A stretch of DNA of 64,000 bases from Hormiphora californensis (GCA_020137815.1 CM035354.1:6696001-6760000), one strand, 5' to 3'; counted from the stretch's first letter, positions 52,132 through 62,922 are shown. Numbers and translations: made by a program. Notes: generated by a model not told the origin, from the sequence alone.

Positions 52132-55100
52132 ATGTCCGTGTGTCAAACTGCTGCGAAGATCTACCGGCGGATCATGATGGTGAGACCGTCCCAGTTTGAT
52201 GTGATCCATCAAAACCTCAATCCGCACATGAGGTAAATCAGAGAGTGAAATTAGTAGTGAAAATTAGTGAAGTTAGTAGTGAAAATTAGTGAAGTTAGTG
52301 GTGAAATTATAGTTCGTCCCTACCAAATATATATGATCAGCATCACTGCGCTGGCAAGCGCAAAGGTGACCCCATCCATCCCCCGAAAAAAATTTCCCCC
52401 AAAAACGGCCCGCTTGCTCACAGCGTATATCACGGCGTGCCTGGTGAAATTTTAACACGACCTAGCATGCGACGGGAAACCACCACTTGTACGTGGTAGC
52501 TGAGGGTCTACAGAATGGCGCTACGGTGCGGGAAAAAACATTCCATTCCCTAAAATCTTTTTTTTTACTTTTATTTGATTTGGGTCAAAATTGGCTATAT
52601 CAAACGTGGTCCCGAAAAATCCATAATGACTTAGCACACGAAATATGTCACCCCCACCTATTTTTGCACGTAGAATTGATTGCCGTTGAAGTCGAATCTC
52701 TAAAATGACTGTAAAATGGTCAAAAGTTGATTTTTTACCATTTTTTGGAGGTTTTTGGCCCCTAAACCATTGAAAACGTTGAGATAGGAATTTGAAACTG
52801 GTGCCAATCGTTAAAATGGTCATTTTTCTACCAAGAACCAAGTTTTCGTGTATATCCGATTTATGGTTAGATTTGGGCAAATTGTTGAAATCTGCCAACT
52901 AGGAGAACCGTAACTTGATTTTCTTGTTTTTTGGATTTTGGAATTTTCGACAAACTTCTGATTGAACTGGTCAATCGGGACCATGCTTAAGTTGTTTATG
53001 GGACAATTTTCGACTAAAATCCAAGATTTCATACCAATCCAATAACAGATCGTTGGTTTATAGAAAATTTAAGTAGGCAAAACGGTGAAAATAAGCAAGA
53101 AAAGTTGTCATTTTCACCGTTTTGCCTACTTAAATTTTCTATAAACCAACGATCTGTTATTGGATTGGTATGAAATCTTGGATTTTAGTCGAAAATTGTC
53201 CCATAAACAACTTAAGCATGGTCCCGATTGACCAGTTCAATCAGAAGTTTGTCGAAAATTCCAAAATCCAAAAAACAAGAAAATCAAGTTACGGTTCTCC
53301 TAGTTGGCAGATTTCAACAATTTGCCCAAATCTAACCATAAATCGGATATACACGAAAACTTGGTTCTTGGTAGAAAAATGACCATTTTAACGATTGGCA
53401 CCAGTTTCAAATTCCTATCTCAACGTTTTCAATGGTTTAGGGGCCAAAAACCTCCAAAAAATGGTAAAAAATCAACTTTTGACCATTTTACAGTCATTTT
53501 AGAGATTCGACTTCAACGGCAATCAATTCTACGTGCAAAAATAGGTGGGGGTGACATATTTCGTGTGCTAAGTCATTATGGATTTTTCGGGACCACGTTT
53601 GATATAGCCAATTTTGACCCAAATCAAATAAAAGTAAAAAAAAAGATTTTAGGGAATGGAATGTTTTTTCCCGCACCGTAGCGCCATTCTGTAGACCCTC
53701 AGCTACCACGTACAAGTGGTGGTTTCCCGTCGCATGCTAGGTCGTGTTAAAATTTCACCAGGCACGCCGTGATATATAGTTATTTCTAACTTTTAGCCCA
53801 TTTTGGCACTTTTTGACATGCCATAACTCCCGAACCGGAAGAGCTAGGAAGCTGAAATTTTGTACTTAGAAGCTTCTTGTAGACCTCTATCGATGGTAAA
53901 AATTTCAAGTGGCTAGCTTTTTTTGTTCAAAAGTTATAACACCACCCCCAAAACAGAAAATTCAGTGTGGGGATAACTAGGTTGATACATATATACATAT
54001 ATATATATGTATAGACGCTTTGTTACCTTCCGTTTGGTCCCAGTTTGAGACGAAACAGACATCGTACGACCTTAAACCAAGCGGCATTCGACAGATAATT
54101 GTCTCGTGCATGTACCCATCTGGGTGGCGACTCTCCATCTTTCCTATGACACGCACAATGACGTCACGAGTGACGTTATTGCGCGAGACCGACTAACTTT
54201 TTTCAAACGCCTCTAGCAACCTGAAGACGTGTTCCGATTTCTGATTTGACGAAAAATCGTTACCGGCAAATCGTCTGAACTTTCAGATACTATATAGCGA
54301 ATTTTCGTAGCTTATCGTTTTGAACTCAAAAATTTGACGAAAAATTCAGCAAATTGAACGTTTTTTGAGCAAAAACTCCCTTTCCTAACCACTGTGGTCA
54401 ATGAAACTTTACAAGCTCCTTTGGGGTACTAATCTCTATTATAATTTGGAGATGAACGTCGTGATGGCCGTTCGTTAAGCGGTATCTAAGCGACAGGCTG
54501 CTCCTTCATAAAACACTTTATGTGCCCAAAGCTGTAAAGCTGTTACTCACACTTTTGGAACTTCCAGTGAAGGTGTGTTAATATTTTCGAATGACTTTCA
54601 ACAATTCAGTCCCCATAGTTACCAATTCAGTTGCCATGGCAACCGTAGGGGCAAAAATAACCACCCGGCGAAGCCGGGTGGGATATCAAAAAGCCCTTAC
54701 TTGAGGCGCACCCAATGGGTGCGCTAGTCCTTATTATAAAGTACAAATGAACGTCGTGATGAGGAGTATGATGTAGTATCCCACGTGCAAATGGTGGGGG
54801 GTTGCCAAGGAGGTGGCTTGGGAGGGGTATAGGAGGTTGCACGTGCGGGTTGGTGCAGCGAGTGAGAGGGGTGCTCCTGGGTGAGGAAGAGTGGGGGATT
54901 CGGGTCAACGGGTGCTCTACTTCAACGGGCTTTCTAGTTCAAAATATATCGTGATGCAATTACGTCGTTACGACGTCACAAATTACGTCAAATGACGTCA
55001 TTATGACGTCTAAAATACGATTTTCACAAAAATTCGTCTCGTTTCTAATACAGTCGGACCCCGATTTAACGGCACCCTCGGGGGAAAGGGTTTTGTCCGT

Positions 55101-60245: not shown

Positions 60246-62922
60246 ATGACAAACTTTGCCGTGCGAAGCTGGACTCGTCTACTCATGTGCCGTCCAACCC
60301 AATTTGATGTCATTCATAAGGTATTGACAGTTTGATAGTATGTAGTTTTTTAATTGTAACTAATAATAATGGAGTGTACAATGTACACTGTACATAGTAA
60401 CTTTTGTAATATCAGACAGCAATCCTAAATAATATGTAAAGCGAAACAAAGATTTGGAAGTGTGGAGGAGTTACTAGGAAGTGTGTCCAGGTCATCGCAG
60501 AAATATATGCCTTCCCAGTCTTCTTTTTCTCCCCATCCGCCTTCCTCACAATCTCAATCAGACCATGAAATCTTCTTCAGGGCCACAACGTGTACATGAC
60601 GATGAGCAAACCAGTCGATAAGCAATTAGCCATGAAGCAATGGGAGGACCTCCGTTCCACTTTTACATCTATCGGGGTGAAAGTTGATGTCATTGAGAAC
60701 TCGCCAGGCCTCGTAGACCAAGTGTTTTGTGCTAACTGTGCGGTTGTGTGGGGAGGAAAAGCGCTCACATCCACTATGTTTAACCCACCGAGAAGAGAGG
60801 AAACAGATCTAACTATTGCATGGTTTACAAATCAAGGATTTCAGGTAGGGTGATTTAGTATAGTTCCTTGAAATGTGACAGCCAACAGGGGCTGTAAACT
60901 GCATGCACCTCTATTTACTTGAAAAGGGCCCCTCTGAGGGGCTGTAAACTCAGAACCGCATGCACCTTTCTCTTTAGGTACAAGACTCTAGACCGAACGG
61001 TTCATTTCTGGAGGGTTGCGGAGACTTTGCGTATAACTATGACAGGAAGCATGCTTATCTTGGATATGGGTTTAGGTAAACAAAAAATTGTGCCTCTTAT
61101 CTCCGTATCCTAACACAATACTTATGCTACACCCGCACACATGTTCCTTTTTCTTTCGGTAAACAGTGTGTACAGGGAAAACACTAGGAGTGTTCCTTGA
61201 TAGCAACCTCTCTATGGAGAGGCAAATCAACAGTGTTAAGAGGCAATGCGGTTTGTTGTTGAAGAATCTATGGCAGGTAAACCGGTGTCTAGATCGACGA
61301 AGATACTCCTTGTTAAACAGCTCATCATTTCAAGACTGGATTATTGTAATATCCTTTACCATGGCTTACCTAAGAAGCTTCTCAACAGCCTTCAGAGAGT
61401 CTTGAACTCGTGTGTCAGATTTGTTTATGGCCTATACGGTCACCAAGACACCTACATGCCATACTTGAAAGAATTGCATGTTCTTCCTGTGGAACAACGA
61501 GTCACGTTCAAAGCATGCCTCATGGCGTACAAGATTGTACATGGATTGGCCCCTGGCTACCTGCAAGATCAGGTCCCTGTTGATGATGGACTTCGTGTGA
61601 TCCGGGCTACTAGAGGAAATGCTTGGCCTGATGGCCTCAAGCTGAAGTACCCTAAGCTATCAAGTGTCAATGCGACTTCCAAGTTGAGAAGAAGACGTCC
61701 GTCGGTTTACCTGCCTGAAGTCTGGAATAAGCTTCCCCTTGATCTGAGAGCTGTTGAGTCTGTGGAATCTTTTAAGTCTAAGCTCAAGACTAGTCTTTTC
61801 ACTGAGGCATTTGGTGAGACTGGACTGTCCTGTTAAGACTCTCCTTCTTGCTGAGGTATGTGCTCTAGCTGGTACCCGTTTTTAATTATTTTTCTGTAAT
61901 TTAGCTCGTGGCGAGCAGAAGTGTGAAGCATAAGTTGGGTTTTTTCATAGCACGAGTGTTTTTCTGTTTTTCCAATCTACGGACTTTTATATCAATCTTT
62001 TTAGAGTTCCAGGACTCTAACTCAGTCTGTTATGTAATCAGTCACCGATAGTTATGTGAGCCGATAGTAATGTGAGCCGGTGTTTTTTCTTTATTAATTT
62101 TTGTTCTATTAGGGATAAGTTGTCAAGGTCTTACTAGTATATTAACCGTTCAGATTATCCTTCAGTGACAGCAGCAGTTTCACTGCTCTGTCCCTGTCGG
62201 ATATGGGCGGAATATAAACATAGTTATTATTATTATTATTATTATAAATCTTCCTGTAAAATATCACAATAAACTAAACTGTATGCATTATATATTTGTA
62301 ATTTTACTCATTTTAGGTCCAATGAAAAATCGTACAACTTTGTTAAAGATAACCTAGATTTTACTGGAACGGAATTCCATAAACTGAAACTAGTTTCCGA
62401 CAAGTGTTACCATCTTGATACAGCAATGTTGAACCTCTCTATGGGGCATGCCCTTGTGTTTACCCCTGCCTTCGACAAACAATCTTTGGACCTCATAAAG
62501 TAAGGAAATAGAGATGTTGTTGTTTATCAGTGCTCTGGCAAGCGTAAACATTGTATTATAAGATCTACAATAATTGAAATAAAAATGAAAACTAACTAAT
62601 ATTTTCAGGGAAATAAATGGAGAGGAAAATGTAATTGAGATAAGTGAGGAAGATTGTGTAACAAATTTTGTTCCAAACGCCATTCCTGTCCAAGGTATGA
62701 ACCGCTAATTAATCAAGTCTTACACGATTTGACTTGCAATACAATTTCTGAAAACTCAATATTTCAGTTGGCGATAAACACTACATTGTGGGTATGGCAT
62801 TCTCCCCTTCACTCCACGCAAAGCTGACCTCTCTGGGCTACGAAATAATTATAGCACCGTATCAAGAATTCAGAAAGAGTGGAGGAAGCATTCGGTGTTC
62901 TGTGCTCGATATTGGAATCTGA
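60246..62922 (+). CDS. Amidinotransferase/pentein-superfamily enzyme, arginine-dihydrolase-like, paralog 2; exons 60246-60320, 60581-60844, 60978-61075, 62317-62499, 62609-62694, 62768-62922 (286 aa)
   Basis: Six exons splice in frame (861 nt): LMCRPTQFDV..HNVYM, QWEDL, PGLVDQVFCANCA, RREE, LEGCGD, GYGFRS, YHLDTA, PAFD, PNAI, EFRKSGGSIRCSV. Confidence 0.85.
61166..62245 (+). mobile_element. 5'-truncated L2/CR1-group LINE in intron 3 of amidinotransferase paralog 2
   Basis: RT C-terminal region LGVFLDSNLSM...ISRLDYCNILY.GLP..L..LQRVLN...LKELHVLPVEQRVTFK...WNKLP..FKSKLKT.LF, with one frameshift near 61290, a 3' UTR and a (TTA)n tail. Confidence 0.88.

Follow-up and report, generated by a model that had tools for sequence, protein, structure and literature searches.

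How an animal genome came to hold two intron-bearing genes for what looks like a bacterial type of arginine-degrading enzyme, and what reaction these enzymes would catalyse, are the questions raised by a locus of the ctenophore Hormiphora californensis. The locus lies at positions 52132-62922 of a 64,000-nucleotide stretch of the genome (GCA_020137815.1 CM035354.1:6696001-6760000; hereafter the window, in whose coordinates positions are given). A preliminary description, made from the sequence alone, had read it as a tandem pair of domesticated arginine-dihydrolase-like genes, here called A and B. The best overall explanation in our judgement, held with somewhat better than even confidence, is a functional pair of host pentein genes whose products would carry out arginine dihydrolysis and whose origin would be non-vertical, close to genes found in giant-virus metagenome bins.

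Two complete genes in tandem

Splice sites were placed by tblastn of natural orthologues (P0151, P0153, P0189, and P0005) against the window and by reading the junctions in the DNA. Comparisons of the window were made one exon at a time, and the natural orthologues served as stand-ins for the whole proteins in trees and family scans. Genes A and B lie head to tail on the plus strand where they had been predicted, and both are complete. Gene A (52132-57779) has a coding sequence of 891 nt (296 codons and a TAA stop) and gene B (60246-62922) one of 861 nt (286 codons and a TGA stop), each in six exons separated by five introns. The protein of gene B has the same length as its Bolinopsis orthologue P0151 (286 residues). 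All ten introns are bounded by GT-AG, both coding sequences are multiples of three in length, and the exons are free of stops. Splice-site mapping and open frames thus bore out the earlier claim of a tandem pair of complete, intron-bearing genes.

Exon 1 of gene A (52132..52232) begins with an ATG and a basic N-terminal extension of 14 residues, continues with MMVRPSQFDVIHQNLNPHM, and has a phase 2 donor. Exon 2 (56455..56561) ends in …CSEPVDKAKASFQWDRLQSVFKNHGLETLTCDPIP-G and matches NCBIfam NF045659 at E = 1e-4. The motifs VDMVFAAN, PRKPE, EGNAE, and GQR are carried by exon 3 (56649..56975), and the catalytic-His motif RFYHLDT by exon 4 (57062..57172), which matches Arg_dihydro of NCBIfam at E = 9e-13. 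Exon 5 (57350..57500) encodes …AFTCNCVSF…, including an invariant Asn, and exon 6 (57686..57779) provides GGAVRC, with the nucleophile Cys, and the TAA stop. Gene B starts with MTNFAVRSWTRLLMCRPTQFDVIHK in exon 1 (60246..60320), which has a phase 0 donor; its exon 2 (60581..60844) carries GHNVYM, VDQVFCAN, and PRREE, and exon 3 (60978..61075), 100% identical to P0153, carries EGCGD and GYGFR. CYHLDT follows in exon 4 (62317..62499), …NFVPNAIPVQ with the invariant Asn in exon 5 (62609..62694), and GGSIRCSVLDIGI with the TGA stop in exon 6 (62768..62922). The N-terminal starts are MMVRPSQFDVIHQNLNPHM in gene A and LMCRPTQFDVIHK/GHNVYM in gene B. The pentein motif set previously listed for the pair was recovered in full, as VDMVFAAN, PRKPE, EG, GQR, YHLDT, and GGAVRC in gene A and as VDQVFCAN, PRREE, EGCGD, GFR, YHLDT, and GGSIRC in gene B.

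Family membership and conserved residues

The family match is not due to chance: on its own, exon 2 of gene B scores 31.3 bits against PF19420 of Pfam (cut-off 23), matches ArgZ in the PDB at E = 1e-6, and hits ctenophore proteins of a 1.8-billion-protein library at E = 3.5e-40 and 5e-31. The orthologues P0153, P0151, P0189, and P0005 reach 58-93 bits against PF19420 and pass its gathering cut-off (23). Scanned exon by exon, the window gave mostly no match in Pfam, and NCBIfam and the PDB were more informative. The check that had been proposed with PF02274, the model of arginine deiminase (ADI), returned no match across the whole genome; this model is too distant from the branch with the F-x-A-N motif for exon-sized pieces. 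A look-up in the ESM Atlas gave the family name and nothing further.

Among solved structures, the window exons matched solely ArgZ (Synechocystis Sll1336) and AgrE (Anabaena Alr4995), the arginine dihydrolases of the cyanobacterial ornithine-ammonia cycle. The full-length orthologue P0151 likewise matched only ArgZ (6juy, 6jv0) and AgrE (6lrf), with E = 9e-40 over residues 11-283, and no solved chain of DDAH or ADI was matched in that search at E ≤ 1e-3. Canonical animal DDAH and bacterial ADI, unmatched in the PDB search, belong to the same superfamily and have the same Cys-His catalytic core. The pentein fold family is shared with ArgZ and AgrE, and the alignment spans the whole domain at about 30-35% identity.

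In NCBIfam, the window exons scored about equally against NF052232 (arginine dihydrolase) and NF045659 (Rv2323c type), with canonical DDAH far below. For the orthologues, the scores were 147-174 bits against NF052232 (equivalog cut-off 450; the octocoral protein reached 208 and the cyanobacterial P0234 523), 150-185 bits against NF045659 (equivalog cut-off 300; the mycobacterial P0212 reached 436), and 26-54 bits against NF045658 for canonical DDAH (cut-off 450). The CtlX model matched the orthologues more weakly than NF052232 and NF045659. Against NF052231, the model of bifunctional ArgZ/AgrE, the orthologues (273-299 residues) cover only profile positions 6-271 of 696. In the window, the stops at 57777 and 62920 come directly after the pentein domain, leaving no C-terminal ornithine cyclodeaminase/LOR-SDH domain; in this the ctenophore proteins differ from ArgZ and AgrE, as they do in having an N-terminal extension and introns. 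The profile, structure, and motif matches place A and B as single-domain penteins of the ArgZ/Rv2323c branch.

ArgZ, AgrE, and the ctenophore proteins have in common D-x-V-F-x-A-N, R-x-x-E, E-G-x-G-D, G-x-R, Y-H-L-D-T, and G-G-x-x-x-C. When 83 members of the family are aligned, 20 residues prove invariant or nearly so (in P0151 numbering, N28, M31, D71, F74, A76, N77, R96, E99, E125, G126, G128, D129, R146, Y177, H178, D180, N230, G274, G275, and C279); gene B keeps all of these and gene A all but two, and the strictly invariant ones are retained in both. The catalytic Cys (G-G-x-x-x-C), His (Y-H-L-D-T), and Glu (E-G) and the substrate-binding Asp and Arg can be read in the exon translations of both genes, in columns that vary little or not at all among the 83 members. 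FAAN of gene A and FCAN of gene B align with FTAN of ArgZ, so that their Asn corresponds to ArgZ Asn71 as counted on the 6juy alignment. The earlier placement in the F-x-A-N, ArgZ/AgrE-like branch, rather than with canonical DDAH or ADI, agrees with both the PDB and the NCBIfam matches. The motif does not serve as a hallmark of ArgZ/AgrE, as had been supposed, since it also occurs in the Rv2323c 'DDAH' type and its Asn is found in 81 of the 83 aligned members.

Two further groups help to place the ctenophore proteins. Rv2323c of Mycobacterium tuberculosis is likewise a single-domain member of the F-x-A-N branch, and the NF045659 scores are equal to or slightly above those of the ArgZ model. 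The 'amidinotransferase' proteins of nematodes (Caenorhabditis Q23042), uncharacterised and about 280 residues long, belong to the same family and likewise begin with a short basic extension; their clade is a separate one beside other bacterial sequences, and they retain the bacterial I-N-P-W-M. At the same place, the ctenophore motif reads F-D-V-I-H-x-x-L-N-x-H-M, compared with x-V-x-Y-x-I-N-P-W-M in bacteria.

Predicted reaction

According to the primary papers, ArgZ and AgrE reportedly break arginine down into ornithine, CO2, and two ammonia, which is also the sense of the NCBIfam naming (NF052232 is called arginine dihydrolase), and the Asn of F-x-A-N is said in the ArgZ structure paper to determine the second hydrolysis. 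DDAH and ADI have an Asp where the ArgZ/Rv2323c branch has this Asn, and their reaction ends at citrulline. In A and B, the Cys-His-Glu active site would attack the guanidino carbon of free L-arginine, and both hydrolytic steps would take place on one enzyme (L-arginine to L-ornithine, CO2, and 2 NH3). Nitrogen would thereby be freed without urea, and ornithine could pass on to glutamate or proline.

In M. tuberculosis, an Rv2323c knockout does not grow on arginine as nitrogen source, and the gene is arginine-induced and needed if carbon from arginine is to reach proline and glutamate; by the account of the study's authors, its annotation as DDAH is without functional basis (PMC4569260). The tie of Rv2323c to arginine catabolism is genetic (PMC4569260), and the actinobacterial clade sits on a different branch of the tree from the ctenophore proteins. 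Because ArgZ/AgrE and Rv2323c both point there, arginine catabolism is the mechanism we prefer for A and B, at roughly even confidence. The one-step arginine-to-ammonia enzyme of the preliminary description is a reasonable guess from homology to the ArgZ/Rv2323c branch, although neither equivalog cut-off is reached. Its further idea, a use of the ammonia in buoyancy or defence, is speculative.

Several points count against this explanation, those on function being given here and those on origin with the tree. Going by bit score, the ctenophore proteins would be equivalogs of neither curated family, because 147-185 bits fall below the cut-offs of 450 and 300. The E-G motif previously noted is present in both genes, but the wider E-G-x-G-D, found in 80 of the 83 members, is altered to E-G-N-A-E in gene A and to E-G-N/A-A-E in the A-type proteins P0189 and P0005; the change may mark a different substrate or altered kinetics, and the two paralogs may act on different substrates. 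Arginase-family loci are present in the genome as well, so A and B are not needed for ornithine production, and a whole-genome search found no other PF19420 locus, which leaves room for methylarginine clearance. The arginine dihydrolase activity of the animal and viral members is inferred from homology. A run search found no RNA for this species, and seawater metatranscriptome contigs match repeats and not exons.

A possible, though distinctly less probable, alternative is that A and B hydrolyse another guanidino or ureido compound (methylarginines, citrulline as in CtlX, or agmatine), perhaps with one substrate per paralog. The arginase-family genes, the altered motif of gene A, and the lack of a further PF19420 locus in a genome where canonical DDAH seems to be missing all speak for it, as does NF045659, named 'dimethylargininase', which is marginally the best NCBIfam match for the A- and B-type orthologues; CtlX also gives matches, though weaker ones. 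However, we found no biochemical basis for the name of NF045659, whose type member, Rv2323c, serves in the utilisation of arginine (PMC4569260), and the name is probably misleading for the Rv2323c-type branch. Canonical DDAH models moreover give only 26-54 bits, solved DDAH and ADI chains go unmatched at E ≤ 1e-3, and the branch-defining Asn of F-x-A-N is common to ArgZ.

The preferred arginine catabolism may have a mitochondrial setting. The animal proteins (ctenophore, octocoral, and nematode) have 13-20 extra N-terminal residues with 2-3 Arg/Lys and almost no acidic residues, and the bacterial and virus-bin proteins start at M-C-x-P without such an extension. The composition of the extension suggests a mitochondrial import presequence.

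Phylogenetic position

Homologues were sought in protein libraries of 1.8 and 5.8 billion sequences. The only named eukaryotic members found were from ctenophores, from the octocoral Dendronephthya gigantea (whose protein has four close relatives without a species name), and from nematodes (Trichinella to Caenorhabditis). The main tree was an unrooted maximum likelihood tree of 83 rows (IQ-TREE, LG+C20+F+G4), with support given as ultrafast bootstrap/SH-aLRT; a quick tree of 94 rows agrees with it. Ctenophore A, ctenophore B, and the octocoral proteins form one clade (100/96), within which gene B groups with the octocorals (95/82), and this clade joins an AT-rich group of virus-bin sequences (100/99). 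The preliminary description had expected the nearest relatives to be bacterial; they are instead octocoral genes and then giant-virus-bin sequences. His24, Leu27, Met33, and Pro95 are common to the ctenophore, octocoral, and virus-bin proteins and set them apart from nearly all those of bacteria and nematodes, and some virus-bin proteins also have the C-terminal ending R-C-S-V-L-D.

The AT-rich sister sequences are unnamed metagenome proteins intermixed with open frames of IMG/VR, many from named giant-virus metagenome bins, at 19-32% G+C. There is evidence that they are not bacterial, because their nearest bacterial or archaeal match reaches at most 40% identity (one genome per species, 185,579 species) compared with 42-55% identity within the giant-virus bins of IMG/VR, and because of their neighbouring genes. 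On three virus-bin contigs of more than 100 kb, the neighbours include an mRNA cap N7-methyltransferase, an Rpb3/11-like RNA polymerase subunit, a DHFR-thymidylate synthase fusion, a dUTPase, and many orphan frames, a set compatible with giant viruses.

Two side observations concern the virus collection. On a 118-kb contig of 21% G+C (L086:3764-6649), a 962-codon frame combines a SNF2/ResIII helicase with a bacterial DNA polymerase III alpha domain and adjoins the DHFR-thymidylate synthase fusion and the ArgZ-like gene. Many other contigs of the collection (L089-L095, at 36-44% G+C) have ArgZ-like genes of the bacterial I-N-P-W-M type that branch with bacterial sequences; these contigs are probably phages or misbinned bacteria.

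A single clade of all animal sequences was rejected by the approximately unbiased (AU) test (p = 2.2e-8), and a clade of ctenophore A and B was not (p = 0.46). On this tree, the ArgZ-like family appears to have entered animals at least twice, with a separate entry in nematodes, and the ctenophore-octocoral lineage appears to share its origin with the giant-virus-bin genes. By the trees, the gene is not part of the common animal gene set.

Introns and age within ctenophores

None of the ten introns is shared in position between A and B after alignment. In P0189 coordinates, those of gene A lie at codon 37 (phase 2), G73 (phase 1), E182 (phase 1), G219 (phase 1), and G268 (phase 2); in P0151 coordinates, those of gene B lie at 25/26 (phase 0), 113/114 (phase 0), R146 (phase 2), K207 (phase 2), and codon 236 (phase 1). 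The closest pairs are separated by about 6 and about 3-4 codons and differ in phase. Because ten introns sit at ten different positions, the ancestral gene probably lacked introns at the time of the A-B split, which fits a foreign, intronless origin, and introns would have been gained independently in the two paralogs. Intron 2 of gene B (after …F-x-V) is old within ctenophores: it is read through at the same point in the genomic fragments P0001, P0003, P0004, P0007, and P0008 from other samples.

The lobate ctenophore Bolinopsis microptera has an A orthologue (P0189) and a B orthologue (P0151) on one 23.6-Mb record, both named 'uncharacterized protein ZK1307.1-like' at NCBI. P0151 shares 74% identity with the B-type metagenomic protein P0002 and about 70% with the larger exons of gene B, P0189 shares 47-59% with the exons of gene A, and P0153, a Pleurobrachia-style gene model, shares 84-100% with those of gene B. 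The duplication is old because both paralogs have Bolinopsis orthologues and B is also found in the Pleurobrachia-type model; the A-B split predates the divergence of H. californensis from Bolinopsis. The earlier picture of a single animal that took up a bacterial gene and then duplicated it has to be given up, both paralogs being already present in Bolinopsis.

Other samples also contain complete A- or B-type coding sequences, on contigs about 1 kb long (P0002, P0005, and P0152). Because each gene has five introns, the best reading of these contigs is that they are spliced transcripts from other ctenophores. The P0153 model is without the true first exon, and its first ten residues (MCNNLNGHTL) are encoded identically at 58337-58366, between the two genes and 1.9 kb upstream of gene B; either an exon was called wrongly there and is conserved because the species are close kin, or this is an alternative 5' exon.

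Transfer or vertical descent

Ancient non-vertical entry into animals is a better reading of these data than ordinary descent, because the ctenophore-octocoral clade is narrow and patchy and excludes the nematodes in the AU test. The preliminary description had named grouping in a vertical animal clade as the result that would speak against transfer. The ctenophore genes do group with those of another animal phylum, but the clade is narrow and patchy and the nematodes are excluded (AU p = 2e-8). On the side of origin, the adverse points are that monophyly of the virus-bin group is weak (76/83), that the ctenophore/octocoral/virus clade lies among bacterial ArgZ-like proteins with a weakly supported backbone to bacteria, and that the label 'giant virus' comes from IMG/VR bin names, low G+C, and a few neighbouring genes, with no capsid or other hallmark gene in the virus-bin contig slices that were read. 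Transfer from virus to animal, transfer from eukaryote to virus, and parallel uptake all fit the tree, and ctenophores and octocorals may have the gene either by inheritance from a common ancestor or by separate acquisition.

The vertical alternative, in which a gene of the first animals or of earlier eukaryotes was kept only in ctenophores and octocorals and was captured by giant viruses, is in our view rather unlikely. Giant viruses often acquire host genes, and the ctenophore-octocoral clade is well supported (100/96); the grouping of B, and not A, with the octocorals (95/82) is as expected of a duplication before the ctenophore-cnidarian split, and the weak monophyly of the virus group (76/83) points the same way. 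However, that old-duplication signal is not firm, because the AU test does not reject A+B (p = 0.46). No member of the clade from other eukaryotes was found among 5.8 billion proteins, at least five losses would be required, and the clade is nested among bacterial ArgZ-like sequences. The lack of any common intron between A and B is also unexpected for an old intron-bearing animal gene.

If entry was non-vertical, a precedent for the pattern is the octocoral mtMutS, whose nearest relatives are giant-virus genes (PMC8438181, PMC3166940), although this is a different protein, encoded in the mitochondrial genome, and absent from ctenophores. We found no literature on ArgZ-like genes in ctenophores, cnidarians, or giant viruses. 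We offer, tentatively and as a doubtful rather than a probable scenario, that early animals obtained from, or shared with, giant viruses of marine eukaryotes a one-step arginine enzyme that later acquired a mitochondrial leader, along with ten independent introns in ctenophores. If so, these animals would have a route of arginine catabolism that bypasses urea and is absent from textbook animal metabolism, and giant viruses with the same enzyme clade would reprogramme the arginine and nitrogen metabolism of their hosts. To our knowledge, arginine dihydrolase has so far been described only from cyanobacteria, plus mycobacteria by genetics. Confirmed activity would extend it to animals of two early-branching phyla, and models of nitrogen excretion and of the arginine, ornithine, and nitric-oxide substrate pools in ctenophores and octocorals would have to change. 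The locus would also offer a datable case of a foreign gene fixed before the divergence of H. californensis from Bolinopsis, and one in which ten independent introns in two paralogs, a giant-virus-bin sister group, and a second entry of the family in nematodes can be studied together.

A second pair and the host setting

The genome searched comprises 110.7 Mb with 13 large contigs. When the whole genome was searched with P0151, another complete A-B pair came to light on contig C4 (1835949-1843129, minus strand; loci L171 and L172), with the same gene order and all ten introns at the same positions as in the window. Between the two pairs, the exons are 92.7% (A) and 93.8% (B) identical; identity in the flanking intron sequence is 73-94%, and nothing but the gene pair was copied. 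Codon differences are 35 synonymous to 17 non-synonymous in A and 41 to 10 in B, with all frames open; from these ratios, all four gene copies appear to be under purifying selection. The whole pair would have been copied to the chromosome-size C4 much later than A and B split. We considered and rejected a haplotig as the source of the C4 pair: exon divergence is 6-7%, intron lengths differ, the transposon of gene B intron 3 is missing, and the pair lies inside a contig of 8.96 Mb.

The claim that these are host genes and not contamination stood up: apart from the lack of a transcript match for this species, which would suit contaminating bacterial or viral DNA or pseudogene relics of a transfer, everything seen makes such a source very improbable, namely ten GT-AG introns, open frames of exactly orthologue length, an intronic host repeat of at least 40 copies, animal neighbours on a chromosome-size contig, four copies that differ mainly at synonymous sites, and orthologues in a Pleurobrachia-type model and, on a 23.6-Mb record, in Bolinopsis.

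The neighbouring genes in the window are ordinary animal genes for sideroflexin, tubulin, and a histidine phosphatase. The sideroflexin gene (48332-49312, minus strand; PF03820, E = 2e-133) is a single uninterrupted frame of 326 codons, 2.8 kb upstream of gene A and on the opposite strand. A giant endogenous viral element around the pair was also considered and rejected, given these neighbours and a duplicated block limited to the gene pair.

Repeats within the locus

Intron 3 of gene B contains a dispersed host repeat of about 1.04 kb (61170..62210, plus strand), of which contigs C1-C13 hold at least 40 copies that are 95-99% identical. It includes an open frame of 198 codons (61240-61833) for which Pfam gave no match, is missing from the paralogous intron on C4, and is matched at 97-100% by seawater metatranscriptome contigs; it is a young host transposon. 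Intron 1 of gene A holds a perfect inverted repeat of 667 nt (52426-53092 / 53110-53776; 100% complementary with a 17-nt spacer), which must be a foldback element or else have arisen in the assembly. Inverted repeats resembling miniature inverted-repeat transposable elements are found at 58789-58999 / 59419-59629, 55308-55786, and 55944-56015 / 56315-56386, in the A-B spacer and in intron 1 of gene A, and a (GA)n microsatellite (56051-56255) lies between the arms of the last of these.

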